Assembly (NCBI GenBank): GCA_002269645.1
Contig: NIVC01000068.1
Span: 558,001 to 622,000, forward strand
DNA: 64,000 nt
Direction of reading: 5' to 3'
DNA from: Macrostomum lignano
Lineage: Eukaryota
Part shown: positions 2,496-63,215 of the stretch, piece after piece
Layout of the letters: the number at the start of each line of letters is the position of its first letter
How positions within the stretch are numbered: the stretch's first letter is position 1
Position numbers and translations under genes: made by a program
The notes under the pieces: generated by a model
What the model saw: the letters and a program-made list of their open reading frames with translations, nothing else
Told to the model about the DNA's origin: nothing
The model's database searches: none

Positions 2496-4410
<1,915 letters not shown>

Positions 4411-10855: not shown

Positions 10856-11079
10856 GGTGCCGAGACTGACAACTCTATATTATCTAGTTGCTAAAGGCAC
10901 ACACACCTGTGCAGCTGGTCACCCTGACGCTTTCAATCTCTTTGCACTCTTGAACATTCAGAATGCTGGCTTCGATATATTTTATGATCCGACTGTTATT
11001 AAGCAGGATTCTGAAGTCATGAATTGGATGTTAATAAAAGTAGCTTTGATAGAATCCACCTCAAATTATCTATAGAATA

Positions 11080-12570: not shown

Positions 12571-13010
12571 CCTCACTCCCTTCAATCAAGCTATCCTAAA
12601 CTGTAAAATAAAAACGCAAACCGCCGATATGGTCCATTTTAATTGATATTTGTAATAAAAGACGAAGAGATGAAATGATAACAAAAACAAGATCGTGACA
12701 CAAAAATGTCGCAAATTCTATAATCAATGGACCCAACTGCTTCGTTAAAATAAAATCAAAAGCTGATACACAGAAAAATATCGTTAAAACGATACGCAGA
12801 AAACAAAAAAGAAGCTGTTGTTATGCGGGCTCGAAAAAACCCCCAAGCTATAGCGACACAACAGCTAAACAGCGATGGAACAATAAAACATGAGTTAAAA
12901 TTAACACAGTAATAATAAAACGTTCAAAAAACACACGAGGAATCGTTTCTTATCGTCGTTTCTCTTCATCAACACAGACTCCTTTGTCTATTATCAATTA
13001 ATCCGTAGCG

Positions 13011-18667: not shown

Positions 18668-18811
18668 GTTGCTTTTCTTGTTTGCTGAGTTTCTCAGAAG
18701 ATGGAGTCAAACTTTTAGACGAATAGGTAATCAATAAAACGGTGGCTGGCTTTTCTGCATAAATTAATTTTCGGATTTTTGTTGCTGAAAATTGCTTTAA
18801 AACTGACTTAC

Positions 18812-26075: not shown

Positions 26076-26184
26076 GGCTCAGGCTGGGGCAGAATAATTA
26101 ACATATAAATAACTTGAGTTAAGTCATGACTTCACCCGATGTTTCTCATGTGATGCTTGGCCTACCAACGACAGATTCTAACCT

Positions 26185-28597: not shown

Positions 28598-28864
28598 TAG
28601 AGTTTTGATTTTTATAGGTAGAGATTATTTAGTATCTAATATAATGTACCATTTTGCTAGGGGTCAAATTATATTAAATTTTTAAGCTTTTTGAGATTCA
28701 ATATTTTTGACAATACAATATAAGATTTGATCAAGACTGAGCTTTTGGAGTTTCTTAATTTTGATTTGTATCTTTACTAAAATAAGCAAGTTTTTGGCAT
28801 TAATTTTTATTAAACCTTAAAAATAAATTTTCCTTGTTATTAGAATGATATGCAAGATATGAAC

Positions 28865-29965
28865 ATATAAGAGCCACCATGTCAAACAAAAAAGAGCCAC
28901 CATGTCAAACATAGAGCCACCATGCCAAACATAAAAGAGCCACCATGTCAAACATAAAAGAGCTACCATGTCAAACATAAAAGAGCCACCATGTCAGACA
29001 TAAGAGAGCCATCATGTCAAACATAAAAAGTGATCATGTCAAACATATACGTGACTCCATGTCAAACATCAAAGAGCCACCATGTCAGACATAAAAGAGC
29101 CGTCATGTCAAACATAAAAAGCCATCATGTCAAACATATACGTGACTCCATGTCAAACATAAAAGAGCCATCATGTCAAACATAAAAGAGCCACCATGTC
29201 GAACATAAGAGCCACCATGTCGAACATAGAAGAGCCACCATGTCAAACATTAAAGAGCCACCATGTCGAACATTAAAGAGCCACCATGTCAAACATAAAA
29301 CAGCCACCATTTCGAAAATTAAAGAGCTGCCATGTCAAACATTAAAGAGCCACCTTGTCAAATATTAAAGAGCCACCATTTCAAACCTAAAAGAGGCACC
29401 ATATCGAACATTAAAGAGCCACCATGTCGAACATACAAGAGCCACCATGTCAAACATAAAAGAGCCACCATGTCAAACATAAAAGAGCCACCATGTCAAA
29501 CATTAAAGAGCCACCATGTCAAACAAAATAGAGCCAACATGAAGAACATTAAAGAGCCACCATGTCGACCATTAAAAGAGCCACCATGTCGAACATACAA
29601 GAGCCACCATGTCAAACATAAAAGAGCCACCATGTCAAACATAGAAGAGCCACCATGTCAAACATTAAAGAGCCACCATTTCAAACATTAAAGAGCCACC
29701 TTGTCAAACATTAAAGAGCCACCATTTCAAACCTAGAAGAGCCACCATGTCGAACATAAAAGAGCCACCATGTAGAATATAAAAGAGCCACCATGTAGAA
29801 CATAAAAGAGAAACCATGTCAACCCGAAAAGAGCCACTATGCCTAACATAAAAGAGCCATGTCTAACATAAAAGAGCCACCATGTCAAACATGGAAGAGC
29901 CACCATGTCAAACATAAAAGAGTCACCATGTCCAACATAGAAGAGCCACCATGTCAAACATTAAA
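28865..29965. repeat. 23-bp minisatellite (ATAAAAGAGCCACCATGTCAAAC)
   Basis: About 47 diverged units. Confidence 0.95.
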
Positions 29966-30054
29966 GATATACTATTTTAAATGTAAAGGTATAAAGCGCC
30001 ATGCCAATATAAAGGAGCCACTATAAAGCTAAGGAAATTGTTGCACTAGCTACT

Positions 30055-31125
30055 TATTGTCTGGTGGATGCTTGCTATCTGAGGGATGCCTGCTATTTGG
30101 GGGATGCTTGCTATTTGGGGATGCTTGCTATTTGGGGGATGCTTGCTATCTGAGGGAGGCTTGCTATCTTGGGGATGCTTGCTATCTGGGGGATGCTTGC
30201 TATCTGGGGGATGCTTGCTATCTGGGTGATGCTTGCTATCTGGAGGATGCTTGCTATTTGGGGGATGCTTGCTATCTGGGGAATGCTTGCTATCTGGGTG
30301 ATGCTTGCTATCTGGAGGATGCTTGCTATTTGGGGGATGCTTGCTATCTGGGGGATGCTTGCTATCTGGGTGATGCTTGCTATCTGGAGGATGCTTGCTA
30401 TTTGGGGGATGCTTGCTATCTGGGGGTGCCTGCTATCTGGGGGATGCTTGCTATCTGGGGGATGCTTGCTATCTGGAGGATGCTTGCTATTTGGGGGATG
30501 CTTGCTATCTGGGGGATGTTTGCTATCTGGGGGATGCTTGCTATCTGGGGGATGCTTGCTATCTGGGCGATGCTTGCAATCTGGGGGATGCTTGCTATCT
30601 GGGGGATGCTTGCTATCTGGGGGATGCTTGCTATCTGGAGGATGCTTGCTATCTGGGGGATGTTTGCTATCTGGGGGTGCTTGCTATCGGGGGGTGCTTG
30701 CTATCTGGGGGTGCTTGCTATCTGGTGGTGCCTGCTATCTGGGGGTGCTTGCTATCTGGGGTGCTTGCTATCTGGGGGTGCCTGCTATCTGGGGGTGCCT
30801 GCTATCTGGGGGTGCTTGCTATCTGGGGGTGCTTGCTATCTGGGGGATGCTTTCTATCTAGAGGATGCTTGCTATTTGGGGGATGCTTGCTATCTGGGGA
30901 ATGCTTGCTATCTGGGTGATGCTTGCTATCTGGAGGATGCTTGCTATTTGGGGGATGCTTGCTATCTGGGGGATGCTTGCTATCTGGGTGATGCTTGCTA
31001 TCTGGAGGATGCTTGCTATTTGGGGGATGCTTGCTATCTGGGGGTGCTTGCTATCTGGGGGTGCTGCTATCTGGGGGTGCTTTCTTTCTGGGGGTGCTTG
31101 CTATCTGGGAGGAGGGGGGATGCTT
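30055..31125. repeat. 18-bp minisatellite (GATGCTTGCTATCTGGGG)
   Basis: About 60 units; source of the GDACYL/GMLAIW ORFs. Confidence 0.96.
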
Positions 31126-37469: not shown

Positions 37470-38222
37470 ATGCAAGACCCACCGCCATATCATATTCTTA
37501 TTCGGGCAGTTTTGATTTTTCTCTGCTCACTGCTGCCAGTCCTGGCTCAGTGCCCCGCTCCCTTCTACATCGAGGCCGCCAGGTGCATATTCGTGAACCC
37601 ATCCCAGAGCTTCACCTGGTGCGAGGCCAATCGGCAGTGCTCATCGATCGGAGGCGAGCTCATCAACTCGTACGGCTCTCTGAAGCTGCTGCCCAACATG
37701 TCGAGTTTTCAAACTGGCAATAAAATCTGGCTCGGAGTGACCGACATGGCGGATGAGAGAAGCACCAGCAGGGAGGGCTGGCAGACGGTGTTCGGCAGAG
37801 GCCAGCTGCCTCTCGATGACTCTCTGTGGGTCAACGGTGACCCAAACAATAAAGACGGTAAACAGGACTGCGTAGGCACCTTTGATAGCTCCACTAATGT
37901 CGTCGACCTCTCCTGCTCTGACAAACTTGGATTCGCGTGCGAGTTCGCTGCAGCTGCTCCGATTCCGGCCCAACTCAGCCAGTGGAGGCGAACTCCGTTC
38001 AAGCGGTCCAGCTACAATCCCAGCTCTGAGTACTGCTTCACTGACCTGACCAACATCGACAGCGCTATCGAGTGCGTTGCCATGGCGATGAGATCGAAGG
38101 ACAGCCAGCACGTGCTGTTCAATAAGAAGCAAAAGAAATGCCGCCTGCTGCACTTCACCGACGCTCAGGTGGAGGAGGCGATCGAGGTGAGCGCCGACTG
38201 GGTGAAGTTCGGCCTGACCTGA
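37470..38222 (+). CDS. Secreted C-type lectin domain protein with C-terminal PAN/apple-like segment, paralogue 1 (intronless, 250 aa)
   Basis: Signal peptide ending PVLA-QCP; C-type lectin pattern FTWCEANRQC...IWLGV...DPNN...DC...C...FACE. Confidence 0.85.
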   Translation: MQDPPPYHILIRAVLIFLCSLLPVLAQCPAPFYIEAARCIFVNPSQSFTWCEANRQCSSIGGELINSYGSLKLLPNMSSFQTGNKIWLGVTDMADERSTSREGWQTVFGRGQLPLDDSLWVNGDPNNKDGKQDCVGTFDSSTNVVDLSCSDKLGFACEFAAAAPIPAQLSQWRRTPFKRSSYNPSSEYCFTDLTNIDSAIECVAMAMRSKDSQHVLFNKKQKKCRLLHFTDAQVEEAIEVSADWVKFGLT

Positions 38223-42019: not shown

Positions 42020-42583
42020 AGTATTTTTCCACAACTTGGCTCGGTCTTGTGGAAAAAAGAACTATAGCTCAACAGTCTATGGTTCTGATCGTCAGTTCCA
42101 AATAAATCGTTTCTTCGTCCGGGACAGATAAATCGTTTCTTCGTCCTGGACAAATAAATGCTTCAACACTAGACCATAGACTTATTTGACCGGGACAAGT
42201 GGGGGACAAATGATTAATTCGCCGGCTCTCCAGTGAATCCAGGAAGCGTCCAATTAAAAATTACTTGATTTTTATTACTCATTTATTTTAAACAATAAAA
42301 ATACCGGAGTGGAATTCCATCAACTTTTACAGCGAGTCGATACACTGCACAGGCAACTTCAGTGTACAAGTAAGGATGATACACGCTTGTAATCAATATT
42401 TTGCCCATTGGATGGAAAGCGAGGGTAGCTCTGATTGGTTGGCCTCCCAGTCGCTAATGAGAATATTTTGGGTCGAAAATCTAGCGAATATAAACGTTAA
42501 AAAAACTCAAATAATTTAGCACCATGAAAAACACCGATTTCAAACTCGATAACCGAGACGAGACTAACTGCAATCGCACCCGA

Positions 42584-43339
42584 ATGCAACGGTCAGTCGC
42601 AGTGCGAACATTTATTCACATTATTTTGATTTTGCTCTGCTCACTGCTGCCAGTGCTGGCTCAGTGCCCCGCTCCGTTTAACCTGGAGGCCGCCAGGTGC
42701 ATATTCGTGAACCCATCCCAGAGCTTCACCTGGTGCGAGGCCAATCGGCAGTGCTCATCGATCGGAGGCGAGCTCATCAACTCGTACGGCTCGCTGCAGC
42801 TGCTGCCCAGCATGCCGAGTTTTCAAACTGGCAATAAAATCTGGCTCGGAGTGACCGACATGGCGGATGAGAGAAGCACCAGCAGGGAGGGCTGGCAGAC
42901 GGTGTTCGGCAAAGACCAGCTGCCTCTGAATGCCTCTCTGTGGGGCAGCATTAACCCAAACAACTTAGGCGGTAAGCAGGACTGCGTTTGTACATACACA
43001 AATAATAGCGAACTCGCCGACTTCTTTTGCTCTCACAAACTTGGATTCGCGTGCGAGTTCGCTGCAGCTGCTCCGATTGCGGCTCAACTCAACGGCCAGT
43101 GGAGGCGAACTCCGTTCAAGCGGTCCAGCTACAATCCCAGCTCTGAGTACTGCTTCACTGACCTGACCAACATCGACAGCGCTATCGAGTGCGTTGCCAT
43201 GGCGATGAGATCGAAGGACAGCCAGCACGTGCTGTTCAATAAGAAACAAAAGAAATGCCGCCTGCTGCACTTCACCGACGCTCAGGTGGAGGAGGCGATC
43301 GAGACGAGCGCCGACTGGGTGAAGTTCCGCCTGACCTGA
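42584..43339 (+). CDS. Secreted C-type lectin domain protein, paralogue 2 (intronless, 251 aa from Met at 42584)
   Basis: Near-identical to 37470-38222 outside the ligand loop; Met 42584 lies the same 18 codons before the conserved Cys as in paralogue 1. Confidence 0.85.
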   Translation: MQRSVAVRTFIHIILILLCSLLPVLAQCPAPFNLEAARCIFVNPSQSFTWCEANRQCSSIGGELINSYGSLQLLPSMPSFQTGNKIWLGVTDMADERSTSREGWQTVFGKDQLPLNASLWGSINPNNLGGKQDCVCTYTNNSELADFFCSHKLGFACEFAAAAPIAAQLNGQWRRTPFKRSSYNPSSEYCFTDLTNIDSAIECVAMAMRSKDSQHVLFNKKQKKCRLLHFTDAQVEEAIETSADWVKFRLT

Positions 43340-44240: not shown

Positions 44241-44439
44241 CTGTTGCAATTTTCTCCAGTTTTGCTGATCATCCATCCTCAGCTGGTCACTCAAACACTC
44301 TTTCATCGCCCCGACGACATCGGCAGCTTCAACAAGTGGCCCGGAGATACATAGAACACCCAGCCCTGTTGCAAATTTCTTAGATAAGCCTTATCCTAAC
44401 CACTGTGCTTGTCCCCTCGTGCTAAGGACCCTGGTGTTA

Positions 44440-46435
44440 AAGCCCCTGGTGTAAGCCCCTGTCGCTAAAGACCCGGGTGCTAAAGACCAGGGTGCTAAAC
44501 CCCCTGGTGTTAAAGCCCCTGGTGCTAAAGCCCCTGGTGCTAAAGCCCCTGGTGCTAAAGACCCTGGTGCTAAAGACCAGGGTGCTAAACCCCCTGGTGT
44601 TAAAGCCCCTGGTGCTAAAGCCCCTGGTGCTAAAGCCCCTGGTGCTAAAGACCCTGGTGCTAAAGACCCTGGTGCTAAAGACCCTGGTGCTAAAGACCCT
44701 GCTGCTAAAGACCCTGCTGCTAAAGACCCTGGTGCTAAAGACCCGGGTGCTAAAGACCCGGGTACTAAAGACCCTGGTGCTAAAGCCCCGGGTGCTAAAG
44801 ACCCTGGTGCTAAAGCCCCTGGTGCTAAAGACCCTGCTGCTAAAGACCCTGCTGCTAAAGACCCTGCTGCTAAAGACCCTGATGCTAAAGACCCTGGTGC
44901 TAAAGACCCGGGTGCTAAAGACCCGGGTGCTAAAGACCCGGATGCTAAAGACCCGGGTGCTAAAGACCCTGGTGCTAAAGACCCTGCTGCTAAAGACCCT
45001 GGTGCTAAAGACCCTGGTGCTAAAGACCCGGGTGCTAAAGCCCCTGGTGCTAAAGACCCGGGTGCTAAAGCCCCTGGTGCTAAAGACCCTGGTGCTAAAG
45101 ACCCTGCTGCTAAAGACCCTGGTGCTAAAGACCCTGCTGCTAAAGACCCTGGTGCTAAAGACCCTGCTGCTAAAGACCCGGGTGCTAAAGACCCGGGTGC
45201 TAAAGCCCCTGGTGCTAAAGCCCTTGGTGCTAAAGACCCTGGTGCTAAAGCCCCGGGTGCTAAAGACCCGGGTGCTAAAGACCCGGATGCTAAAGCCCCG
45301 GGCGCTAAAGCCCCGGGCGCTAAAGACCCTTGTGCTAAAGACCCTGCTGCTAAAGACCCTGCTGCTAAAGACCCTGGTGCTAAAGACCCTGCTGCTAAAG
45401 ACCCTGCTGCTAAAGACCCTGCTGCTAAAGACCCGGGTGCTAAAGCCCCGGGTGCTAAAGCCCCGGGTGCTAAAGACCCGGGTGCTAAAGACCCGGATGC
45501 TAAAGCCCCGGGCGCTAAAGACCCTGGTGCTAAAGACCCTGATGCTAAAGACCCAGGTGCTAAAGACCCAGGTGCTAAAGACCCAGGTGCTAAAGACCCA
45601 GGTGCTAAAGACCCAGGTGCTAAAGACCCAGGTGCTAAAGACCCTGGTGCTAAAGACCCTGATGCTAAAGACCCTGATGCTAAAGACCCAGGTGCTAAAG
45701 ACCCAGGTGCTAAAGACCCTGGTGCTAAAGACCCAGGTGCTAAAGACCCTGGTGCTAAAGACCCAGGTGCTAAAGACCCTGGTGCTACCCTGGTGCTAAA
45801 AACCCAGGTGCTAAAGACCCTGATGCTAAAGACCCTGATGCTAAAGACCCTGATGCTAAAGACCCAGGTGCTAAAGACCCAGGTGCTAAAGACCAAGGTG
45901 CTAAAGACCCTGGTGCTAAAGACCCGGGTGCTAAAGACCCGGGTGCTAAAGACCCGGGTGCTAAAGACCCGGGTGCTAAAGACCCGGGTGCTAAAGACCC
46001 GGGTGCTAAAGACCCGGGTGCTAAAGACCCGGGTGCTAAAGACCCGGGTGCTAAAGACCCTGGTGCTAAAGACCCGGGTGCTAAAGACCCGGGTGCTAAA
46101 GACCCGGGTGCTAAAGACCCGGGTGCTAAAGACCCGGGTGCTAAAGACCCGGGTGCTAAAGACCCTGATGCTAAAGACCCTGATGCTAAAGACCCTGATG
46201 CTAAAGACCCAGGTGCTAAAGACCAAGGTGCTAAAGACCCTGCTGCTAAAGACCCGGGTGCTAAAGACCCGGGTGCTAAAGACCCGGGTGCTAAAGACCC
46301 GGGTGCTAAAGACCCGGGTGCTAAAGACCCGGATGCTAAAGCCCCGGTGCTAAAGACCCTGGTGCTAAAGACCCGGGTGCTAAAGACCCGGATGCTAAAG
46401 ACCCTGGTGCTAAAGACCCTGCTGCTAAAGACCCT
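44440..46435. repeat. 2-kb 15-bp minisatellite (GGTGCTAAAGACCC[T/G/A])
   Basis: About 130 units; generates the long GSLAP/VLKT ORFs. Confidence 0.97.
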
Positions 46436-48902: not shown

Positions 48903-51900
48903 ATGAAGGGGAAGGCACATCAAGCACATCAGCCAACTGCACCGATCCATGCCTTGAAGCAGTTCTGCCAGTACACTACGGCGCACGGCCTTGGTCGGTT
49001 CCGTTCGCAGAGCAGCGCCTATGGTCGCGTCATTTGGTTGGCCTTTCTAATTGGCACCTACAGCGGTTTTGCTTATCACATGTACACCCTATTCGACAGG
49101 TTCTTCAGCCTGCCGCTGCTTACCACCCTGACCACGTCGCTGGCCTATCGCTTCCCGGATGTGTACATCTGTCCAAACGACGCTTTGTCAATTAGCAAGC
49201 TCACGGACAGCTCAGCAGCACCGGAACTCAACTCCCTGCTCAACTGCGATACCAACTGCAAGTTGAACTTTCTGGTATTCGACATTGCCAACGCGGATCC
49301 AAGCACAGGGTGGAAGCGACCGCGGCTTGGCCAGCCAGCCCTGGCCCTGTCGGACACTCTGGCCGCCATTGAGACCGGACTCACGCACGAGTTTCGCTTC
49401 ATCATGCAGAAAGAAGGTTAGTTAAGGTACTTTGTTGACGTGTAAATGTTAAAATGAATCTCTGAAGATACACTTCGAGAACAAAAAATATACGATTCTT
49501 TACCGCACCCAGCCATGTCTAAGAAATTCGAGTGCAGCGTCCTTCTACTAAGGTTGTCCCTGGGTCGCGGGCTCCTGAAGAATAATACTTAGCTAGCTAT
49601 TTTCGAAGGGCCCTCGGCAGTAGTTTCAACGCGCTGATGGATGCTGTAAACCATATTTTATTCTACATTCAGAAACCTTGCAATGTCCTTGGGCACATGG
49701 TCCACAGTTCTGGGGCTGGTCTTGCGCCTCCTCCACAGTTGCAAATGAGGCTATGGGCCAAATTGAGGCTTGTTGGACCAAATTAAATGCTGCTGTGTCA
49801 GCCTTGCTACCATAGACAAAAGCTACGTGACATTGGCGAACGTATCTTGGATTAAATTCAGTGCGCATAAGCCCAAATGGACTGAAAAAGATATATTTAC
49901 ATTACTGCTACAGTCTATTGTCCGGTAGATTTCTGAGATTAAAACTTAATGTTCATCTTACATAATACGTTTTTATTTCAAGTTAAAAAAATGAAGTTAG
50001 TGACAAGAAAAAAACAAGAAAAAATTGTGTTTAAATGCCTTTGTTAAAAACGAAACACCTTAAAACGCTAGGTGAAATTCTTAAACTTGGTTTCAATGAT
50101 GTTTTAAATGAGGAAAATGATGCAACTAGCTCGTAGAACCCATTTTAGAATAGCATAAGAACTAAAATAATTGAACCTAAATAATGTCCGGAATGAAACG
50201 AAATTAAACGAACATAACGACATCATGACATTCCGCCCTGTACAGTTACCTCATGTACCAACTCCATCGACCGTGGCTGCTTGCCCAACGATCTATTCAA
50301 CCTTGGTTGGATTTGATTTAATAAAGTTTGTGCCCGTCGAAGGCTACAAGCGTATATGTTTAGTCAAGACGAGTGCGTTGAAAGGTCAGACTGGACCCAT
50401 AGAATCTTGTCGTAAAATAACATTTTCACATACTGATCGGTCGAACTTGCGGCTAGAAATAGTATAGCATTTTTCAAGCTATTTGAGCCTAGGAGCAAGC
50501 AATTTAATCCTTAGTGGAAAATCAAGCTATTGAAGACATGTTTTTCATTGTCTATGGCCCGAAAGGGGGTCTATGGAGCAACCAATTTGAGAATCTGGGC
50601 GCGAAATTAATCCTTTTCACAGTGCTCGTATATCTTTCACGAATAACTTCACTGAAATAACGTCTGCAAATAGATGGCATATCAAAAAACGATTGACATT
50701 AGCACTTTGATTTCATAGAAACCAATCAAAACAGGCCCGTGATTTCATAGCGACGCCTGATAGAATACACAGTTTTTCTCTTTACGTCCAGCCATCGCGA
50801 AATGTGCTCAGCACTATCACCTCTCTCGATGGCAGCGACAATCAGGTCGAACTTTTCGTTGCTTATCTTGCGATAGGGTTCTTGCCCTGCAGGATTCTTC
50901 TCATCCACTGCATCTTGGGCTGTAGCAGAACTTTGTCACTGCTTTTCTCGCTAAATTCTTCGTCTGCCATATCCATGTTTGTCTAATGAAATCTGTTGTT
51001 TTCTATGGTCTAAGGCTTGCACAACTACGGAAAGGATTAAAAGCGCCCAGGTTCTCAAATTGGTTGCTCCACAGACCCCCCTTTGGGCCATAGACGATGA
51101 AAAGCAAGTCTAAAATAGCTTGATTTTCCCACCAAGGCTCAATTGGCGTGAAAAATGCTATACTAGATTAACCATTTTAAATGCGTGCATAAATTTTCGG
51201 CTGTAGTGTAACAGAATTAGCATGCTTCCATGGGTTGACCTATTCTAGCCGGGAGAAAAGCACCACAAATTAAGTGGCACAGCAGCACTCTAAATATTGT
51301 TAAATTTCCGCCACTGGAGGGTCCCACGAGAATCAATAATTATTATTAATAGCCGGCCTATTTTGTTTCCTGGCTAGATAATAAAGTTACATAATAGTAG
51401 ATGGACAGCTTGAGTTCAGTTTTTTTAGCTCACGCAAGGCAGCCAAAAACGCTGCTGAGCAAACAGAGGCCAGAGGCAAATAAAAGGGCGAGGGTGACGA
51501 CCCCAGCCAGTCCACCATTCCAATGCACTTAGAGCCAAACCAACGCCGTAACTTCTAAAGCGGTCCTTGATCCCAACAACAGCTGTGTTTTCTGAACCAA
51601 TTTTGTTAAGATTTGCTTTATTGTTTGGGTTTCCTCATAGAGAGACTTGTTCTTAGAAAAAGAAGATAGGAGATAGGCCTGCTAGTCGTTGGTCGGTCGC
51701 ATTTCAAAAAAAAATAGCTTGATGAACTTGTGAGTGCACTTCGGACAAAACACTTGCTAACCTTCTTTGGAATACAGAAGTCCAGCATTTGGGATATTGT
51801 TAAGCTCTCCTTGGCAGCAACAACCGGTCTCCATTGAGTTGTCCATATACATGTAGTGACTCTGCATGCATTTCCTTAGTAGAAAAATTGCGTTCTCAAA

Positions 51901-54900
51901 CAGTTGATTTAAGGTTGATTGATAACCAATCGATTGGTTCTCTCTCATTGAATTAATACAATTAAATTGCACAGCTTCGTCCAGATCTATGGGTCAGAAC
52001 TGCCGCTTCACGGCTACCGGCGAGGAGTACTCTGGCAGCGTGGACGCAGCCGCCGTGTACTCTGATAGCTTCCTGACCGCGCCTGTCGATCGCACGCAAC
52101 AGCCTGATAACCAATCGACCTCGGATTTCGTGGCATCATTTCTGAATCGGCCAAGATGCCTGGCCTGGAGCGAGGCGGCTCGAAGGCTTGAACAAGTCCA
52201 AGGCCAGTTTCAGTCGTCTGCCCGACTGCTGGCGGAACGCATCCGGGCTTTGAACCTGTCGAATGAAGACAGACGATGTCGGAAACCCCCCGGACTGTCT
52301 CTGCAGAGCCTGCGTGATCTCGGAGTTGCTACGTGTAAGTTGCAGCTGGCAGACTCATGGTGTTGCGGATCTGTTGAATGTCGCTTATAGATTTTTGCAG
52401 TTACGTTTGTTTAGTACATGTAGGTTGGTTTTAGACACTGAGAGCAAGGGGTTCCATGTGTTCTCATATGACCTCCGAGCAACCAGGCTCCCGTACTTCT
52501 GAACTCTTATAGTAATACTAGGAACATTTCTTAAGCAGATACATAGAACCTTAGAGAATCGTTCACACTGACATCAACTGAGTCATGAATCATAGGTCGT
52601 ACCATTAATGTATATAAAAGAAATATATGTACAAGCCGTGTGATTTTGCAAAATCAGGGATAAATGGCCAGATATGCAACCGACAGCTCAGCCGCAGCTA
52701 TTGCGCGTCGCATCTGAAGGCTGCGTACGGCTGTTCAGTCCAAGGACTGGGGGGTCGCCACACACACAGCCTCAATTACCCCAGCTAATGCTGGCACCTA
52801 TTTTACAACTGGGTGAACTGAAGCAATACAGAGTTAATTGTGTCTTACTCAAGGACACAAATTGTTCCTAGTGGGTCGAGAAACTAAGCCCCGACCTTTC
52901 AGTCAATTGAGTCCGACGCTATAACCCCTCTAGGTCTCATTATGCTGTTGACAAACGTTAACTATAGTTACCTTTACGAGGTAATGATTATACTGAAAAG
53001 CGATCTTTGTTTTAATTTACAAATCGAAATTACAAGAAAATACAGAACTTATTTTGAATGCTTCGTTCGCTTATCCGTTTATCAGGAAGTCTTTCTTTAA
53101 CATATTTTAACGACAGACTCTGCTAGAAAGTACATCGGGTGCTTCTCGAAAAAATTTGCACTGAGCCGATTCCACCAAATGATGGACTGTTTTGATCAGC
53201 CAGCGAGATTTCTGTCACCGGAATTGTGCCAAAAGTGCTGCTATCGGAGAAACTTTACCCACATGGCGCTCGATCAGCAAATCTGTCTGTGTAGCTCGCT
53301 ATCTGATGCCGAAGATGATTATCAGCTGCTCAAACCGGTGCGAAATTCTAAGCCGGAGAAGTGCTCAACTTTTTGCGGTGGCGGCAACGGACCTGGCGTC
53401 TACTGCGGTGGTGGAGACAATTTCACCAGCGTTTACCGGATTCGCGAGTCGGGTGAGTCGCTTCCATATGCTTGGAATTTTAGAAACATTTTCGAAAACC
53501 CCTGTTAGTCACTTCCGCTAGCTCACAGCTGACGAGCTACACTAATTCGAAAATAAAATTTACACCTGTTCCAATCGAGCCAGATGTGCAACCGACAGCT
53601 CAGCCGCAGTTATTGCCCGGCGCATCTGAAGGCTGCGTACGGCTGTTCAGTCCAAGGACTGGGGGCCGCCACACACCCTCAATTACCCCAGCTAATGCTG
53701 GAACCCGTTTCACAGCTGGGTGAAGTGAAGCAATGCAGAGTTAAATTCCTTTCTCAAGGACACAAATTGTTCCGAGTGGGTCAAGAATCGAACCCCCAAC
53801 CTTTCAGTCGTGAGTCCGATACTCTAACCACTGGACTATAACCCCCCTCCCCCCCAATTAGATAATATTATACATGTATATCCAATAAATATTATTGCGA
53901 AAATATCACATTATAATTTAAAAAAGAAAACTAATAATCTAAAAAACGAAAACTGATCTATCTGCACATGCATGCCGTGACAACTACAGTATAGCAGAAC
54001 TCTACACCTGTTAATTGTTCAAATTTCAAGGGTTTGACCTAATGTCAAACTGCTAGCTTGCGATCCCCTATTTCTTCAGCTTGGAATCCGGTGTTTATTC
54101 CGCTCCGACCGGAAGCTGTTACATTTTTTGATGGCCCTTTCTGCTTCTACGACAGTGCACATGGACTCATGGCGGCTGCTAGCTGCAACATCCCCTACTG
54201 TGGTGAGTATGCTGAGTCTTCGGCCATGGGCTGCTCCAATCCAAAATTTTTATCAAATATTTGTTTTCAGAATGGATAGTCGTGTAGTGTAGATGTAGGG
54301 GCGCCGTATCCCTGTGCTCTGATATGCCAGCGGCCCAGGCTCGATTCCAAGTGCAGTTGCATTAATTTTCGGGCTAAATTGGAATTTCGGCTTGGCTCTG
54401 CTCATGGAATTAGCGCCCTTGAGGGCCAACCCCCAAGGCACAGTGAAGTGTACATGCCTAACGATAAATAAAGTTAGGGCCGCTGTACACTCCTGTGTGA
54501 GTGTGTGCCTGCGCGTATGACTGCAGACGTATCCGCGCGCTTGTACCCTTAGTACACTTACTACAATGTACCCAATCCTTACTCAGGCATACCAACAAAG
54601 TACGACTGCAGCATTAGCAGCAGTTTGGCTGGTACAAGAGCCGCCAAATCAGAGATCGACCACTTCAGCCATTACACTGGAGCGGCGAACCGAACCATGA
54701 CGGCAAGGCGCTGCCTAACCTGGGCTGATGTCAAGACAAATCTGGAATCCGGAGTCTGGAAAATCCTTGCCAACAATGCAGGGGGTCACGAATCGGCGCC
54801 TTGGTTCCGGCACGACCTGCCGTTTAGCAGTGAGTCCAGTGCATGCGGCTAGTGGGTGAGCAAGAAGGACGACTTCAGAAAAAAGACAAAGAAATTTGTT

Positions 54901-57900
54901 GCTTTTAAAAACTGCTTTTTTTCATGGGTTTTTGCAAAGCTTACTTTGTAATTGACTTTAGTGATTGTATAGTATGAGTTTGCACATATTCGGCTCACTT
55001 TTTATTTCGACCTGCTTATCGGGGGGAGGCCGTAGCCTGGCGGTCTAGCACGGCGCTCTGATGTGGCAGTGGTCCGGGCTTGACCCCAAGTACAGTCACG
55101 TTAATTTGGGGCTAAATTGGAACCTCGGCTTGGCTCTGCTCGTGCAATTAACGCACTTGAGGACCAACCCGGAACAGGAAAGTGTACATAGTAACTGATT
55201 ACACCTGCCCCATCTCACATCTGAAGGCTGCTTACGGCTGTTCAGTCCAAGGACTGGGGGTTCGCCACACTCACCCTCAATTACCCCAGCTATGCTGGCA
55301 CCCATTTTACAGCTGGGTGAACTGAAGCAATGCAGAGTGTCTTGCTCAAGGACACAATTTTTCCGAGTGGATCGAGAATCGAACCCCCGACCTTTCAGTC
55401 GTGAGTCCGACGCTCTAACCAATAGGCTACAGCGTTCCGGGCTTGACCCCAAATGTACTTTGTGTCCTTGACCCCCCGTGTACATGCCTAACGATAAATA
55501 AAGTTAGTGTCGCTGTACACTTCCGTGTGAGTGTGTGCCTGTGTGTATGACTGCAGACGTATATGCGCGCTTGTGTGCCTGCTCAGGGGAGTCGGTAGAA
55601 TGGGCGGGCAGTTGGCTGACAATGTTGCTTAAAGTGCGCCAGGGTGCAACATAGCCTTTTGCCTCTAATAAGAAATGCAATGTTTCACGCTACAGTAGTA
55701 TATTTTTCGTTGGGATTAGTTTTCATTATTTACCCATCAGCTTTATTAATCAGTCTAGCTATTTGATATAGTTTAATTGCTAAAATCTACATTTCTAAGA
55801 AATTATGTTTCCCGTTGAAAGGGAAAGAGCTCTGATTCAACTGTTGTTGTTGCCGACCCAGCTTGGTAACTGGTCGTTGGATCACCATGCAGGAGCCGAC
55901 TGGCTGCAACACGGCACAACTAGAAGCCACCTTTCCACTCGCTAGACAGATTCCAGTGCCAATACTTGACTCAGCTGCAGGGGGCTTCGTGCGTCTGGAA
56001 ACAGCGAGGAGGCGTTGCCGCACACTTTGCTAACCTCTGGCGACCACGGGCAGCTAGTGCTGCGGTGTCGCGCAGGGAGTTCCGGTGGTGCCGGTGTCTG
56101 CAGCGCGGTCCCCCTCCGGAGAGTCCAGAAGGTGGATGGTCGCTTGCCCGGTAGCCCTTAGGGTAGCGGACGAGCTGGCAGAGATTCTCGGGCCTGAAAA
56201 CGTCGGAGAGGTCCGGGTTTGGGCCGAGGTAGGTGAGCCTGTCCTGAGTAAACAGATGAAGGCATTCCCAGATGAAGTGCTCCGCATTCTCGACACCGGA
56301 GAGGCAGAATGGGCATTCCTCACTGCCGATCTCACTGACGATGCCTGGCAAAACAGCCATTACCGAGAGGGCCATGGTCACCGACCTGATGTCCCTGCAG
56401 TTGAGTCCAAGCAGGGGGCGGCCGACCTTACGCGCTACTTTTGAAATTCCAGCATTGGCGGCCAGCAGAGCTGGAGGTGCCTAACGAGTGCTTGAGACTG
56501 GTCCCAGAGGCCTACTGGACGTGGCGAACTTTAATACGGCTTCATGGAAATGATCGGCGTGAACGTTATTCGATGCTACCGGTTATCATTTTAAAACTCT
56601 TTAAAAACTGTAAACATACTGTAGATCAATAATGTTTTTGCACAGTTGTTCTCTTAGCAGTGTGGCCGTTTGTGTCCTCGCACTTCTCTGCTATGCAATG
56701 CATTAGCTATACAAGGGCTGAGAACACTTCTTATCACGGCTTCATCGGACATTCGCTTCGCGTCTTTAAATTAGAAATTTCCTAGCCAGTTATTTCTGAT
56801 CCCTATGGAGGATTTTCTTATCTGTTTTTTTAGGCAGAATAAATAAATGTAGCCATTAAGTCTTTTCGTGTTTCCCAATATGGCTGAATATAGCGAATAT
56901 ACTCGAATTGGATATTGTAAACCTTCAAGCGGAAGCTCTTGTAGGTTTCGTTCAGAAAACTTCCGTTCAGAATTCAATCAGATGGCCTCGCGTTTTTTAT
57001 TCCTGATGCTCTTTGGAATTAAAAAAATGGAATCTCCTTTCTTGTTTTTCAGTCAGAACATACCGAGTGCTCAACGTGCACATCGACATGCCCGACTTTG
57101 AGACGAGCAGCCAGCACAGCTTCTGTCGCTCTGTCATGGTTGTGATTGAAACTCTCTACACCCTGAGTAATGGCAGTCAGGTATTCCGGTGAGTTGCAAT
57201 TTGAACCAGGCCTTCTGGTCCTTTACTGTAACTAGACTTTAATTTTCCTGATTCCCGAATCCCTTGCAGCCGAGAGCCATTCCTCAGTTCAAGCAGGCCC
57301 GGCTGTTTCACACAAAAACATGGATATTTAGCCTTCGAGGAGTGCGAGATCGACAACTGCTGTAAGATTTTGTCTCTGAACAATATTTGACTGTTTCTAA
57401 TGGGAGTCATTATCACGCATTAGGCACCTGAGCACACCCACAAGAAGGATACAAGAAGCATACTAAAATGTTGAGTTCAGTATCTTAGAGACTTAGACGC
57501 TATTTTTTGAGAAAGTGATAGAACTTTTCATGAATTAAATAAAAAGCTACTTAATAAAACTAAGAACGATGCATGTACTGTAGAGACTACTCACGAAATT
57601 GAGTTCAGTAGTTGATTTTGATGTAACCGCCCTTGTCGCCCTCCGCTCCGTTGAGAAACGAACGCATGACCAGAGGGGGCAATGACCGTAGGCTGCCTAT
57701 GACCGGGCAATGACCTGACGGACCTCCAGCACCAGACTGTCCCGCCCACATGATTGATAGCTTTGGTAGCGCTTTCGTGACCAGAGGGCCAAGGACCCAC
57801 ATGGACCCCACCTGTAGCCAAGGTGCAATAGTTGGTCACTCGGTCAGAGCATGACCGAGTGGCTGCCACCACTCTAAGTGACCTGGCGCACCTGGATCTC

Positions 57901-60900
57901 ACTACCAGACCTCTCGAGGCTAGAGCCCCGCCTGGATTGGTTACCAGGGGATTTAGGCTAACAGGGGAGACACATGCAGCCGAGTACAGGGACTCTGCCT
58001 GGGGCATGATCGGGAACTCTGGGCTCAATCTGGAGGATTTCTCAGCAGGGGATCCTTTGTGGCTGTGAGCGAGGCTGACTTGCGGCTTTGATTACTAAGA
58101 GTAGTGTGAGGCGAACATGTACTGTCTATAGTTTAGATTGCTCAGGGCGAAGGGACGCGTCAGCATGGGGTTGCAACATTCCTACTGCCATTCTGTGCCA
58201 AGACTCGCTAATCCCCTCTACTGCACGCACACACGGCCCCGCAGCACGCACTCACAGGCGAGCTTTGCACGGGGAGAGGCCATTAGCTTACCCAAACTTC
58301 CTTATGCTTAGCCACCCAGGGAGAAGGCTTAGCAAGCCATGAGTGAAATGATGGTGAAAGTGTGAATAATGAGGAGTTTAGTAATGGTTAATAATTAGGC
58401 CCTTAGGCAAAATAATCAGGCAATTAGGCGACTTCACTATTGAATAAATACAGCAAATAATACGGTATCACAATTGGCTCAGCTCTCTAATCAAGCAATG
58501 GAAAATAGGCAAACCCCGGATAAGCAAGGCAATTAGAGCACAAATTAGTAACAGGAACTTACCGGCAGCTGCACAGAGAGAGAGAGAGAGAGAGAGAGAC
58601 GGAGTGACCGTGGGCGGCTGTTGGCTGCAGTCAGGCAGACTGTGAAGCGGCGATGCGCTGAAGCGGTGAGGCGCGGATGTAGTTCAGGCGATGCTGAAGA
58701 TGCTGTGCGGTACCAGACCGCGGACCGGCAGGTGAGCTCACTTGGGGAGCTGAGGTAACTTGGCGGTAACAGACCGCGGACCGGCAGAGGTTCGTCCTAT
58801 AGACGAATGGGTCAGATCAGTGTCTGACAGCAAGTCCAAAGAAGGACGAGGAGACGAAGATGTTGAGGATTCTCATGCCGAAAACCGCTTCCTTAAATAG
58901 CCTTCCCAGCCGCCGCTCCAAGATCGTTTCCATGACTCACTCTCTCTGATTGGCTGCCGGCAGAATGACGTCATAATGAGTCATGATGAGAAGCATGAGA
59001 ACGGCATAGCAACATGAGAAATGGGAAAATTGCGCAATCTGGGAGGAGGGGTGGGGGATAATTGGCGCAGCGGGAAGTCGCGAAAGTGTTGCACATGCAA
59101 ACATTGAGAACAATGGGGCTGGGGTCGAGAACAAAGGAAATAGAAATCGAGGATAATTGGGGAGAATCGAGAACAATAGAAAAGTAAACATTGGAGAAAA
59201 GGTGCTAATGGGGTGCGAAAACAAGAACAAAAGAAAGAGAAAATCCTGGAAAATGTGATAATTGGGTGCGAAAGGAGAACAAAAGAATCAAAAACGAGAA
59301 CAATAGAAGCGGAGGTGAGGTGGGTGCCGCATGAGAAATTTGGGGAGGAGAACAATGGCATGAGAAAATGTTGCGCAAGAGGGGGTGGTGTGAGTCATCG
59401 ATGAGTCATCGAGAGGAAAGAGGGGTCACAAGACTTGCGTCACCGTTTGGGAGTTTCAGTAGGAATGGGGTGACGGTGAGCGCACAAAGTACTGTCAGTA
59501 GATGCCAAAAGAAGGAGGGACAGCGCAGGAAAACAGTGCAAAAAGAGAAAAAAGATGGGAAGCGGGAAAAGTGCAAGATAGATAGGGTAAAGCGCATGAG
59601 AAATAGGGTAGCGGGTGAGGTACAGAGAGAGGTAGGGGCTCTGGAAAGGCATGTGTGGCGGCGCGGGAGACGGAGCCGAGGCAGCAAGGGGATGCAGCAG
59701 AGCGGGAGTCAGCAGGCCTGGTCAAAGACCTGGCCCAGTCTCGACGGCTCTGCTCAGGAGGTGCACGGAGATCGGAGGTACTTTTGAAAAATGTCCCCTA
59801 CCGTATCCCGCGACCAGAGCGTGGTTACATCAATTTTCGCAAAGTTTTTTACATTGGCTTTTATGGCCACATAAGTGGTTAATGAGTGCGTATATATGAT
59901 CTTTGGCTGTAGCTCATAGACGTTCAGTGCAAGTCTGGGAGTGCAATAAGCACTATGTTTGCTTTTTTGGCATTCTATGCCAGATTATTAAAATTTACTA
60001 CTCTTTTACTTACATAACAGCATTTTTTAAATTAAAACTCAGCGGATAATTATAGCCTGCTTTGTTATTACAACTTATTACTATTTTTTTAATAGTCCGG
60101 ATATCCAGATTGTGCTTCTGAGCAATCTAAATCTACAATCTCATGTCCAGATCACGCGGTGCCGAGTGTCACAGCCTCGCTGCGGGACTCTCTCGGAACT
60201 GCACTGCTGTCCAGGCAGTTCAGCAGCGGACTCGCCACCTCGCTGTCCAAATGCGTCTTTGGCGATCGCGCATGCGACAGGAGCCACTTCATGACCATGG
60301 TTCATCCAGAGTTGGGCCTGTGCCACAAGTTCAACTACGAAGCGTTTGCTAGCACAGGCAGTGGCACCTTGGCCAAGCTGTCAATCAAATACTTCTCGGA
60401 CAAGATGGACTCGTTCGGTCATTCGTACGAGAACTCCAGCAAGCTGGCTTACGCTGTACGCGACACTCGGCACAGGTCGGAGTCGCAGAGCGCTCTAAAA
60501 GTAGGTGCTGGACTTGCTTTGCAGTATATCTGTCGTATGTAGATAAGACCACTTTCCAGGTCTCTCTTAGTGTTTTATCTGACTGTTGACAGGAGTTCTT
60601 TATCTGACAAAAGTCATAAGTAGCAGTATGAGCAGCAGCAAGGTCCACGGGCCTCATGTGACCCGCAAAGCCTCTCTATCGGGTCTTTTGAAACTTCACA
60701 ATAGCAATCCGGCCCGCTCAAGGTTTGTGTCTCTTCTCAGCTCTCTTCTTTCTAATCTAAAAGCTTCTCTTTTCTCTCCTCTCCTCTCCTCTCCTCTCCT
60801 CTCCTCTCCTCTCCTCTCCTCTCCTCTCCTCTCCTCTCCTCTCCTCTCCTCTCCTCTCCTCTTCTCTTCTCTTCTCTTCTCTTCTCTTCTCTTCTCTCCT

Positions 60901-63215
60901 CTCCTCTCCTCTCCTCTCCTCTCCTCTCCTCTCCCTTCCTCTCCTCTCCTCTCCTCTTCTCTTCTCTTCTCTTCTCTTCTCTTCTCTTCTCTTCTCTTCT
61001 CTTCTCTTCTCTCCTCTACTCTCCTCTCCTCTCCTCTCCTCTCCTCTCCTCTCCTCTCCTCTCCTCTCCTCTCCTCTCCTCTCCTCTCCTCTCCTCTCCT
61101 CTCCTCTCTCTTCTCTTCTCTCTCCTCTTCTCTTCTCTTCTCTTCTTCTCTTCTCTTCTCTTCTCTTCTCTTCTCTCTCTCTCTCTCTCTCCTCTCCTCT
61201 CCTCTCCTCTCCTCTCCTCTTCTCTTCTCTTCTCTTCTCTTCTCTTCTCTTTCTCTTCTCTTCTCTTCTCTTCTCTTCTCTTCTCTTCTCTCTCTCTCTT
61301 CTCTTCTCTTCTCTTCTCTTCTCTTCTCTTCTCTTCTCTTCTCTCCTCTCCTCTCCTCTCCTCCCTTCTCCTCTCTATTCTCCTTTCTTATCCTCTTGAT
61401 ACTTTCTACCGCTTTGAAGATTTACTCCGGTTATATTTTATTTTGTTGCTATCTGACAATACAGTTGTAGTCTTATATGAACTCGAATATGATTTTATAA
61501 CGAATTACGAATTACTCGTAAAACCTTTCAAGGTTATTGTGGTTCCACCTGGAGCATATCCCTGGACAAAAGAGGCCGTTCCTGTGTACCCTGGACAGCA
61601 CGTTGAACTAAAGCTAAGATTCGATAAGAGCACTCGCTACTCGAAATCGCCTTATCAGCCATGCACTCAAACAAGAAGCAGTGTGACATATCGACTGGAG
61701 TCTTGGAGTAACAACTACTCAGTGTATGTGTTCAAGTAGGCTCAATCCTTTGTTTAGTTGTGCTGCAACATGGGTTCTAGAATTGGTATATAAAGAAATT
61801 TTAATGGTCCCTGTTATTTACTCGTATGCAAGAGAGGTAGATGGACACGACATAGATACACGTCGTCACTGACACTGAATGTGACTTCTTCGAGCCCGTA
61901 TCAAATCCGAAACTGCTGCAAAACGCAGGGATTGTTTTAACCCTTCTATGGGTTTTTAGATGCTTAAGTAGTCCCTGGTGTAAGGTAATTCTATACTATA
62001 GTATCCCTCATTTCTGTCCTGTTGTCGGGAGAGTACGGGAATGGCTGATGGACTGCGTGGGCCGGATAGAAGCCACACGAAGTTAAGGAATATTAAGCTA
62101 GTGTTCGGGCCTGAGGACGGGGCTCTATTTGGAGGAGGGACACATTAGACCGCCAGCCAATCGCAGGGCGAACGAGGGGCGCACTGGGACCGCAGCCAGC
62201 CAAAACCGGCTGGCCCATACAGACAGTGGGGTGGGTGCAGTTGGGGGTCTGACGCAGACAGAATGGGGGGGGGGTTGACGCAAGCACGCGGGCCGGAGGG
62301 GTAGGAGTGCAGTGCCGGGCACACTTGACCGAGAGTCAGAGATTGCTTATCGGTGCAAATGTACCCGAACACAACACAATATAAACAGAATGGTTATCTT
62401 CAAGAAACGAAAAAACAAAAATAATTTCAGACTTTATCCTGAACTGCCAGTCACCTTCGGCGAAATTAACTGGAGAAAAAAGATTACCATACTCGGTGAT
62501 TTATTAAAAAGGATTAGCGACGCGAAGTAAGTGTGTAGCTTAACTTTTAGATTAAAAAGTCTATATTAAAGCAAATAATAACTCTTGAAAAAAAATTGCA
62601 GGGGCCCAATGCAAAGCACCCTTCACTTTCCAATGGCAAGCCGCAGTGACTGCATAAACGACTTTATAGTGAAGAAATTCATCGAGCACTGCGGATGCCT
62701 TCCTTCCGGTCTACCTGTGCAATTGAAACACTTTGACAATCACACGTACTGTTTCAATTTGACTCACTCGCAGCAGCTGTTGGCAATCGAGTCCTGCTAC
62801 CAAGCCCAAGTGGCAAGCATGCCGCAGTACGAGACAGAGGCGCATCGATCCTGCTTGCCCCAGTGCGAGACCCAGCGTTATTCAATTCGGCAATCCTCGC
62901 ATCCGTGGCCTAATTTGCGCCGGGAGACTGCCGTAAAGTTTCTCAAGGTTCTGGCGGAGTTGCACGGCTACCCGGATGAGATGCGATCCACATGGGGCGA
63001 GTCGGCGCTCTACTTCATGTACGAACGGGCCGCTCAGTTGGTTGACCAGAAAAGCTCAGAAAAGTCGGCAGAAGATTGGATTAATTTCTCTCGCCAACTG
63101 GAAGCTTTGCAAGACCAACTGGCCATGGTTAGCGTGCAGGGCAGGCAACCGTTTGGTGAAGAAACTTTCGAGGAAGAGGCCTATCCAACCAAGAACTTGC
63201 TGGCGGATGTTGGAG
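48903..63215 (+). CDS. DEG/ENaC (amiloride-sensitive sodium channel family) subunit, 3'-partial; core exons 48903-49416, 60109-60534, 61465-61723, 62641-63215; probably also the six kringle/WSC exons at 51975-57361
   Basis: YTTAHG gating motif, TM1, FPDVYICP, SKCVFGDRAC...LGLCHKFN, YPW...PGQH...PYQPC, CINDFIVKKFIEHCGC, CLPQC, pre-TM2 LLADVGG followed by a phase-1 donor; TM2 exon not found in window. Confidence 0.88.
50462..51163 (-). mobile_element. Internally deleted IS630/Tc1/mariner-type DNA transposon
   Basis: About 150-bp TIRs starting GTATAGCATTTTTCA, TA TSD on both sides, internal HTH remnant (ISNEKFDLIVAAIERGDSAEHISRWLDVKRKTVYSIRRRY). Confidence 0.82.
51975..52334 (+). CDS. Exon encoding the N-terminal part of kringle 1 (Cys1-3)
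   Basis: CRFTATGEEYSG...RCLAWS...RCRKP; acceptor TTGCACAG, donor GTAAGT, phase 1-1. Confidence 0.8.
52668..52935 (-). mobile_element. tRNA-derived SINE family 1
   Basis: Match to other copies. Confidence 0.85.
53117..53452 (+). CDS. Exon encoding a WSC domain
   Basis: YIGCF...LSPELCQKCC...MAL...ICLC...KCSTFCGG...YCGG...SVYRI; 8 canonical Cys; phase 1-1, donor GTGAGT. Confidence 0.87.
53568..53838 (-). mobile_element. tRNA-derived SINE family 1
   Basis: Match to other copies. Confidence 0.85.
54080..54202 (+). CDS. Exon encoding the C-terminal part of kringle 1 (Cys4-6)
   Basis: DGPFCFY...SCNIPYC; acceptor TTTCTTCAG, donor GTGAGT, phase 1-1. Confidence 0.8.
54290..54545 (+). mobile_element. 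Second dispersed element family (tRNA-like head), copy 1
   Basis: Shares GGCTAAATTGGAA..TCGGCTTGGCTCTGCTC and GTGTACATGCCTAACGATAAATAAAGTTAG with 55020-55570. Confidence 0.7.
54587..57361 (+). CDS. Kringle 2 over three exons: 54587-54829, 57053-57188, 57270-57361
   Basis: YDC...YTGAANRTMTARRCLTW / HSFCRS / RPGCFT...EECEIDNC; six Cys; phases 1-1, 1-2, 2-1; donors GTGAGT, GTGAGT, GTAAGA. Confidence 0.78.
55020..55570 (+). mobile_element. Second dispersed element family, copy 2, interrupted by a minus-strand SINE family 1 copy (about 55192-55430)
   Basis: Head GCCGTAGCCTGGCGGTCTAG...GGGCTTGACCCC; 3' half resumes after the SINE. Confidence 0.72.
55842..56530 (-). mobile_element. Degenerate 3' end of a non-LTR retrotransposon with (CAA)n tail
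   Basis: GNGCFARH (shifted frame), CPFCLSGVENAEHFIWEC zinc knuckle, tail at 55842-55852. Confidence 0.7.
57619..59832 (-). mobile_element. LTR-like element (probable solo LTR), termini TGATGTAACC...GGTTACATCA
   Basis: 10-bp inverted TG..CA ends; ATTT at 57615-57618 and 59833-59836 as 4-bp TSD; no pol seen. Confidence 0.55.
58890..58985 (-). promoter_or_regulatory. Pol II promoter-like cluster within the LTR-like element
   Basis: Minus strand order: TGACTCA, TGACGTCA, CCAAT, TGAGTCA, then TATTTAAG. Confidence 0.45.
60760..61375. repeat. (CTCCT/CTCTT)n polypyrimidine pentamer tract in a channel intron
   Basis: Directly visible; source of the SSPLL ORF. Confidence 0.96.

Follow-up and report, generated by a model that had tools for sequence, protein, structure and literature searches.

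The window analysed here is the whole 64,000-nucleotide (nt) stretch of Macrostomum lignano DNA introduced above, and the feature under study occupies its positions 48,903–63,215. The locus is very probably a single protein-coding gene for a DEG/ENaC (amiloride-sensitive-type) cation-channel subunit that carries an in-frame kringle/WSC insert. The architecture itself is almost certainly real, and the insert is likely to be part of the main isoform. The protein joined from the window exons scored 108.6 bits against the Pfam model ASC (PF00858; cut-off 23.6), distributed over three stretches, and the DEG/ENaC motifs were also found by reading the translation directly: YTTAHGLGRF, a hydrophobic first transmembrane segment (TM1; VIWLAFLIGTYSGFAY), FPDVYICP and CVFGDRAC. 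As a DEG/ENaC subunit the product is predicted to form a trimeric cation channel. The exons are given below with their matches to Pfam and to hidden Markov models (HMMs) of the paralogue family; P0001–P0023 are labels for M. lignano database proteins and L001–L003 for their genomic loci.

48903–49416 (+): channel exon 1, 514 nt, ATG start, phase-1 end, donor AAG/gttagt; Pfam ASC E 1.1e-14, family HMM E 4.5e-53
51975–52334 (+): insert exon A, kringle 1 N-half, Cys1–Cys3 (CRFTATGEEYSG...CLAWSEAAR...RCRKPPGLSL), phase 1-1; paralogue HMM E 2.6e-20
53117–53452 (+): insert exon B, predicted complete WSC, 10 family-conserved Cys, phase 1-1; paralogue HMM E 2.4e-15
54080–54202 (+): insert exon C, kringle 1 C-half, Cys4–Cys6 (GPFCFY...SCNIPYC), 123 nt, phase 1-1; paralogue HMM E 6.7e-11
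54587–54829 (+): insert exon D, first part of kringle 2 (DC...YTG...CLTW), phase 1-1; paralogue HMM E 6.5e-9, Pfam Kringle profile 7–30 at E 0.018
57053–57188 (+): insert exon E, middle of kringle 2 with Cys3 (IDMPDF...SFCRS), phase 1-2; paralogue HMM E 4e-7
57270–57361 (+): insert exon F, end of kringle 2, Cys4–Cys6 (PGCF...ECEIDNC), phase 2-1; paralogue HMM E 1.1e-4
60109 or 60151–60500 (+): channel exon CVFGDRAC...GLCHKFN, phase-0 end; family HMM E 2.2e-33
61533–61735 (+): channel exon VIVVPPGAYPW..., 203 nt, phase 0-2, as in the 206-nt exon of L003; family HMM E 1.8e-18
62431–62526 (+): small channel exon LYPELPVTFGEINWRKKITILGDLLKRISDA, 96 nt, phase 2-2, sites cag/A and AA/gtaagt, resembling P0019 residues 739–771; the weakest exon call
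62602–63215 (+): large channel exon reaching the pre-TM2 sequence LLADVGG, 614 nt, phase 2-1; Pfam ASC E 7.6e-12, family HMM E 1.3e-66

Exon 1 contains the start codon, the HG motif, TM1, FPDVYICP and the initial part of the finger. A preliminary description of this DNA had placed a phase-1 donor at 49416, a phase-compatible acceptor at 60109 and, between the two, six exons with GT-AG sites that join in frame. All of these were confirmed: the six insert exons have AG acceptors and GT donors throughout, sum to 1290 nt and leave the phase-1 frame open with zero stops. The whole spliced coding sequence (CDS) of the window comprises 11 exons and 3067–3109 nt, is free of stops and frameshifts, has canonical splice sites throughout and shows the exon end phases 1,1,1,1,1,2,1,0,2,2,1. 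The insert block lies on the same strand as the flanking channel exons, in the 10.7-kb gap between them.

Two acceptors are available for the first channel exon after the block. Both 60109 and 60151 are AG sites in phase, 42 nt apart, and may be alternative 3' splice sites. The latter gives the spacing seen in the family (C-Y-HAVPSVTA vs C-Y-TKVPTVTA) and fits it better than 60109, the use of which adds 14 residues with two extra cysteines at their bounds (CASEQSKSTISC).

The paralogue family in Macrostomum lignano

An HMM was built only from the M. lignano database insert sequences and searched against the 1944 open reading frames (ORFs) of the window. It matched exactly exons A–F, with nothing else below E = 1, an outcome well outside chance expectation, and the profile coordinates of the six matches are colinear (3–102, 95–198, 191–234, 226–288, 292–332 and 337–374). 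Also tblastn searches of the M. lignano proteins against the window recovered each exon, in order, and nothing besides. At the protein level, residues 16–718 of the joined window product aligned with P0019, P0005, P0006, P0003, P0023 and P0002 in single high-scoring segment pairs that run across both junctions of the insert (31–33% identity, E 1e-100 to 1e-119).

A search with the channel part found P0001 and P0002, both of which carry a homologous block, rich in cysteine, in the corresponding position. With the block of P0002 as query, HMMER was run exhaustively over 1.84 billion representatives; this brought up the family members P0003–P0009 and P0018, and true multi-kringle proteins were matched at block residues 202–273. 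A word-indexed search with the 429-aa block had given no match, and the recovery of the family by HMMER shows this to be a limit of sensitivity and not true absence. The members found are all from M. lignano and form at least eight protein clusters in UniProt and GenBank, so that the subfamily appears, from these sequence searches, to be so far seen only in this flatworm. The GenBank records include the full-length members PAA82974.1 and PAA59863.1 (1052 aa, Met through TM2 to the C-terminus) and a partial one, PAA47210.1 (1091 aa), while the automatic names in UniProt are 'WSC domain-containing protein', 'Kringle domain-containing protein' and 'Amiloride-sensitive cation channel 5'.

These records weaken the earlier suggestion that the architecture was undescribed. 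No paper that describes it came up in the literature searched on ENaC or degenerins combined with a kringle or WSC, on DEG/ENaC channels of Macrostomum and on the Mlig genes, and the M. lignano DEG/ENaC channels expressed in a published FaNaC study are encoded by genes other than this family. The architecture is nevertheless already deposited under automatic names; wide prior annotation had been named as a point that would tell against the claim, and what was found is an architecture that is not unique to the locus but is confined to one species in the databases.

The gene structure is shared as well. Exact mapping with GT-AG introns only, of P0002 on L001 and of P0019 on L003, divided the insert into six exons with the phases 1-1, 1-1, 1-1, 1-1, 1-2 and 2-1. 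All 11 phases of the window gene are identical to those of L003, past one extra N-terminal intron of the latter, and agree with the mapping of P0002 on L001. The exon lengths 123, 96 and 614 nt are shared with L003, and the 123-nt length of exon C is found also in L001; in the M. lignano paralogues the introns flanking the insert block are only ~520 bp long. At least five M. lignano loci on different contigs have this common layout. All the 22 family-conserved cysteines of the insert (6 + 10 + 6) are kept in the window. The window copy differs from each M. lignano paralogue (28–32% identity in the insert, 41–47% in exon 1) as much as the paralogues differ from each other, and it thus appears as a deep branch of an old family, not as a decaying copy.

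One locus at first seemed to depart from this layout, as P0005 could not be mapped exactly onto L002 in spliced form. A truly different gene structure was ruled out there, because a 6.7-kb element interrupts an exon and L003, a near-identical and uninterrupted duplicate of L002, maps exactly. In L002 (NIVC01000440.1, gene BOX15_Mlig007204g1) the counterpart of window exon E is split by ~6.7 kb at ~6062–12784. The inserted sequence has inverted-repeat ends (AACTACGTATCGCGCC ... GGCGCGATACGTAGTT) and a duplicated GTAC on both flanks, and looks like a DNA transposon within a coding exon; in the annotation based on transcripts it is taken for a non-GT-AG intron.

Domain composition and placement of the insert

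The insert is predicted to consist, in order, of the N-half of kringle 1, a WSC domain, the C-half of kringle 1 and kringle 2, so that the WSC would be nested in kringle 1 between Cys3 and Cys4. The family alignment shows C-R-x-T-x-x-G-E-E-Y-x-G ... C-x-x-W-N/S-x-A-A-R ... R-C-R-x-P-P-G-L-P-L in the first kringle half and G-P-Y/F-C-F ... C-N-I/V-P-x-C in the second, and between them the WSC-like stretch G-C ... E-x-C-x-x-C-C ... C-x-C ... C ... C-G ... V-x-x-I-R. Kringle 2, which has long loops, reads D-C ... Y-T-G ... C-x-x-W ... T-P-D ... N-F-C-R ... P-x-C ... C-x-I-x-x-C. The preliminary description had recognised the same domain types but set them in series as kringle-WSC-kringle; the types stood, and the order was replaced by the nested one on the basis of the family alignment and hhalign comparisons.

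When the WSC was excised, kringle 1 matched a profile of 17 true kringles in hhalign with a probability of 97.3% (E 1.8e-11), over profile positions 1–84 of 84 and with six cysteines aligned. Kringle 2 matched the kringle profile with 97.1% (E 5.6e-11), also with six cysteines aligned, and in exons D+E+F joined the exon F part matches Pfam Kringle profile positions 49–79 (E 1.8e-4). The signatures G-x-x-Y-x-G, C-x-x-W, C-R-x-P and P-x-C-F/Y of the six-cysteine kringle pattern are present, and the multi-kringle proteins that the P0002 block matched in the exhaustive search (phmmer) agree with this reading. A kringle fold with 1-6, 2-4, 3-5 disulfide topology is putative for the two domains. A canonical lysine-binding kringle is not expected, because in the family alignment PPGLPL stands in the place of the NPDGD-type acidic motif after Cys3.

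The WSC assignment draws on both paralogue sequences and models. The Pfam WSC model scored 39–43 bits (cut-off 27.8) in P0005, P0006, P0007, P0019 and P0023, in all of them colinear with window exon B, and a sequence search of the PDB gave a direct match to yeast Wsc1 (7pz2, E 2e-6). The AlphaFold2 (AF2) model of window exon B (53119–53451; predicted local distance difference test (pLDDT) 72, predicted template-modelling score (pTM) 0.70) matched below E 0.01 only WSC structures, namely Wsc1, Kremen and Fusarium glyoxal oxidase, with a template-modelling (TM) score of 0.63–0.72 to Wsc1 7pz2 and TMq 0.62–0.64 to the Kremen WSC. Exon B is thus modelled as a WSC (PAN/apple-like) fold with a conserved cysteine framework. 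The AF2 model of the P0005 insert (pLDDT 72, pTM 0.67) found Wsc1 as its best match (TMt 0.79), followed by four Kremen entries, and the analogy to Kremen proposed earlier was in this way borne out by fold search; no isolated kringle was listed below E 0.001 in the Foldseek search of this pLDDT 72 model. A CUB domain was not matched in the Pfam scans. The position of the predicted WSC, in its own phase 1-1 exon between two kringle half-exons, would be the expected trace of a shuffled exon that entered a kringle intron.

In the channel the insert lies ~80 residues past the post-TM1 motif FPxVxxC and ~35–50 residues ahead of CxFxxxxC. P0005 residues 10–97 align to residues 66–155 of FaNaC (7yvb) and residues 580–613 to 207–240; between these anchors FaNaC has ~50 residues and P0005 ~480, of which the insert makes up 386. 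The interval between the anchors is the first finger segment in DEG/ENaC structures. The anchor alignment together with the known DEG/ENaC structure places the insert, by inference, in the extracellular domain within the first segment of the finger, which supports the earlier placement between FPxVxIC and CxFxxxxC in the finger.

Transcript support and alternative explanations

The GenBank annotation of the Mlig_3_7 assembly (BOX15 tags) consists of TransDecoder ORFs on transcripts assembled from RNA sequencing by StringTie, TACO and de novo assembly, and these transcripts had been divided wherever a trans-splice or poly(A) site was mapped by experiment (PMC5730564). Models of this transcript-derived kind are P0002, P0005, P0019, P0006 and P0023, all with the precomputed Pfam order ASC, WSC, ASC. 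A single DEG/ENaC gene with an in-frame insert built from phase-symmetric exons, as first proposed, is supported, and this same architecture is present in transcript-derived paralogues. The domain scan that had been foreseen, an ASC match split around Kringle and WSC, came out in part: the paralogues read ASC, WSC, ASC, and in the window itself Kringle stayed below threshold and WSC gave no match, so that from this sequence by itself the domain names had been read off cysteine patterns and not off a database match.

Several observations weigh against a channel with a complete kringle/WSC insert at this locus. In the window the Pfam Kringle model (PF00051) reached 14.8–22.2 bits, below its gathering score of 34.3 and over parts of kringle 2 only, and Pfam WSC (PF01822) did not match window exon B even at E 10. 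Neither did a PDB sequence search with a two-sequence insert profile give any match at E 10. The nested topology of kringle 1 comes from sequence profiles, the RNA support is from paralogue models at other loci that derive from short-read transcript assemblies, and the exon with TM2 and the GxS filter lies beyond the window end (in P0005 this region reads GGALGLWSGISVLTVCELIE). In addition, the insert is incomplete in the predictions P0001, P0004 and P0008, and there may be isoforms that lack some of its exons.

The last of these bears on the alternative that survives best, although it is judged unlikely: that the insert exons are cassettes, the main isoform skipping all or part of the insert and the kringle/WSC form being minor or tissue-specific. 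Each of the units A, B, C, D and E+F begins and ends in phase 1 and can hence be skipped by itself, and P0001 lacks E+F, P0004 the end of kringle 2 and P0008 the C-half of kringle 1. These three are however genome-based predictions from an older assembly, while the transcript-derived full-length models P0005, P0019 and P0023 bear the entire insert. The loss of exon B or C alone would moreover disrupt a disulfide-bonded domain, and the complete set of cysteines is conserved. The missing parts in P0001, P0004 and P0008 could reflect either exon skipping or prediction gaps in the older assembly.

That the window gene is a pseudogene, or the insert a degenerating relic, is very improbable. The weak Pfam scores of the window, its loops, which are longer than in the M. 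lignano database members, and the repeats resembling transposable elements in its introns could be read in this way. A degenerating copy would have to be reconciled, however, with a spliced CDS of 3.07–3.11 kb without stop or frameshift, canonical splice sites throughout, all 22 conserved cysteines kept, an exon B model that folds as WSC, and a divergence from the paralogues equal to that among them.

The least probable alternative, given next to no weight, is an independent secreted-protein gene nested in a long channel intron and fused to the channel in annotation or assembly. The same-strand position in the 10.7-kb gap, the phase-1 flanks that preserve the frame on skipping, and the existence of polycistronic, trans-spliced precursors in M. 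lignano (PMC5730564) would allow it. Against it, exon A lacks a conserved start codon, and neither a signal peptide there nor a stop belonging to the block is present, the latter two points having been noted already from the sequence. The reading frame continues through the two junctions in the window as in five or more M. lignano loci, despite ~70% sequence difference, and the introns on either side of the block are just ~520 bp in the M. lignano paralogues. The models also came whole out of the TBONE pipeline, in which transcripts are split at trans-splice and poly(A) sites (PMC5730564), and the search of 1.84 billion representatives brought up no relative of the block that stands alone.

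Known relatives, possible function and other features of the window

For a channel subunit with the kringle/WSC insert, the nearest solved relatives are FMRFamide-gated FaNaC (7yvb, 8on7), ASIC5 and ENaC, with which the window product shares the HG motif, TM1, FPxVxxC, CxFxxxxC and a cysteine-rich extracellular domain. It differs from FaNaC in the first finger segment, where the window family has a kringle[WSC]-kringle module of 370–430 aa in the place of ~50 residues. The ENaC GRIP domain and inhibitory tracts, the regulatory and Cys-rich domains of MEC-4 and other degenerins, and the finger insertions of FaNaC are likewise lineage-specific finger sequences, but their folds are unrelated to the present one and none of them is a recognisable mobile extracellular domain gained as phase 1-1 exons.

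To our knowledge, Kremen is the other animal protein that pairs a kringle with a WSC domain. The insert model matched the Kremen1/2 ectodomain (kringle-WSC-CUB; 5fws, 5fwt, 5fwu, 5fwv) in Foldseek with E 5e-5 to 3e-4 over ~170 columns. In contrast to Kremen, the window family has no CUB, its WSC is placed inside a kringle and not after one, a second kringle is added, and the host is a two-transmembrane channel subunit instead of a single-pass Dkk/LRP6 co-receptor; the identity is ~15% and the likeness is one of resemblance only. The best structural match of the WSC part is yeast Wsc1 (7pz2), to which the P0005 model aligns with TMt 0.79, a root-mean-square deviation of 2.3–2.4 A and 31% identity, but Wsc1 is a fungal single-pass cell-wall mechanosensor without kringle and without channel.

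Regulatory sequences peculiar to one lineage are usually added to these channels in the finger, where gating is controlled by proteolysis, by tethering and mechanics or by peptide binding. It regulates ENaC (proteolysis), ASIC (protons, toxins), FaNaC (peptide) and the degenerins. WSC domains form part of a wall-stress sensor in yeast and of the face by which Kremen binds Dkk, and kringles are modules that bind proteins. In the window family there has been a radiation into many paralogues, in which the loops of the insert vary and the scaffold is fixed. Because the finger is a regulatory site, WSC and kringle domains bind elsewhere, and the loops vary on a fixed scaffold, it is possible that the insert controls gating by binding or tethering, though this is advanced with reserve and soluble ligand and matrix tether are not separated by the analysis. 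The control of ENaC by proteases has been reviewed (PMC9540061).

In the mechanism proposed, three kringle[WSC]-kringle modules would crown the trimer and give the channel its own means of binding an extracellular protein or glycan, which might be a soluble ligand or a component of the matrix or glycocalyx. Occupancy or tension would then be passed via the finger to the gate, as with the finger insertions of ENaC, ASIC, FaNaC and degenerins. Put more specifically, and as a tentative proposal, each subunit would bear in its gating finger a Kremen-like domain-in-domain receptor module, and binding of protein or glycan, or pull from the matrix or glycocalyx, might open or tune the pore directly; the spread of paralogues would then mean that the modules have come to differ in the ligand or tether they recognise.

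It has long been asked how mechanical force or macromolecular ligands gate DEG/ENaC channels. In the nematode touch channel the proposed extracellular tethers are separate proteins and hard to study. A covalent binding module borne by the finger would offer a natural test case in one polypeptide, in which the module can be deleted, swapped or loaded and the channel recorded. The gene furthermore illustrates exon shuffling into the extracellular domain of a channel in a clear form, with phase 1-1 modules and a WSC exon within a kringle intron. M. lignano is amenable to transgenesis and RNA interference, which makes the paralogues accessible to localisation and knockdown.

The introns of the insert block contain interspersed short repeats (52667–52753, 53579–53665 and 55174–55260; 54448–54544 and 55478–55574) with cores of 87–97 nt that are 64–95% identical. 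At 50516–51129 there is an element whose inverted termini are 87 nt long and separated by 440 nt; it adjoins a helix-turn-helix-like ORF at 50726–50908 (-). The intron repeats of the insert block are probably relics of transposons, which would explain why the introns are longer than at the other M. lignano loci. Minisatellites are extraordinarily dense throughout the window, in ~25 arrays with periods of 4–134 nt, for example at 397–1300, 3226–3775, 18814–19784, 28862–29967, 30060–31109, 44414–46435 and 60774–61375; they include a 15-mer in 135 copies, which closely precedes the channel gene, and a (CTCTC)n tract in one of the introns of that gene. Simple and tandem repeats are reported to make up 15% of the M. 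lignano genome (PMC5730564), with which the density in the window is in keeping.

Other genes of the window were recognised as well. Two single-exon paralogous ORFs of 250 and 271 aa, at 37470–38222 (+) and 42524–43339 (+), have a signal-peptide-like start and match Pfam Lectin_C (E 1e-7). These C-type lectin ORFs are tandem duplicates ~5 kb apart, with no exact record in the protein collection. Exons of an amyloid-precursor-protein (APP)-like gene with APP_N, APP_Cu_bd and the APP C-terminal motif lie at 13014–18706 (-), and within that gene, on the opposite strand, there is an RNase H/reverse-transcriptase-like fragment at 14157–15185. The remaining genes are a flavin monooxygenase gene at 21725–26078 (-), the best database match of which has 58% identity, a fumarylacetoacetate-hydrolase-domain gene at 2499–4479 (-), and a long coiled-coil gene without Pfam match at 6608–10879 (-).

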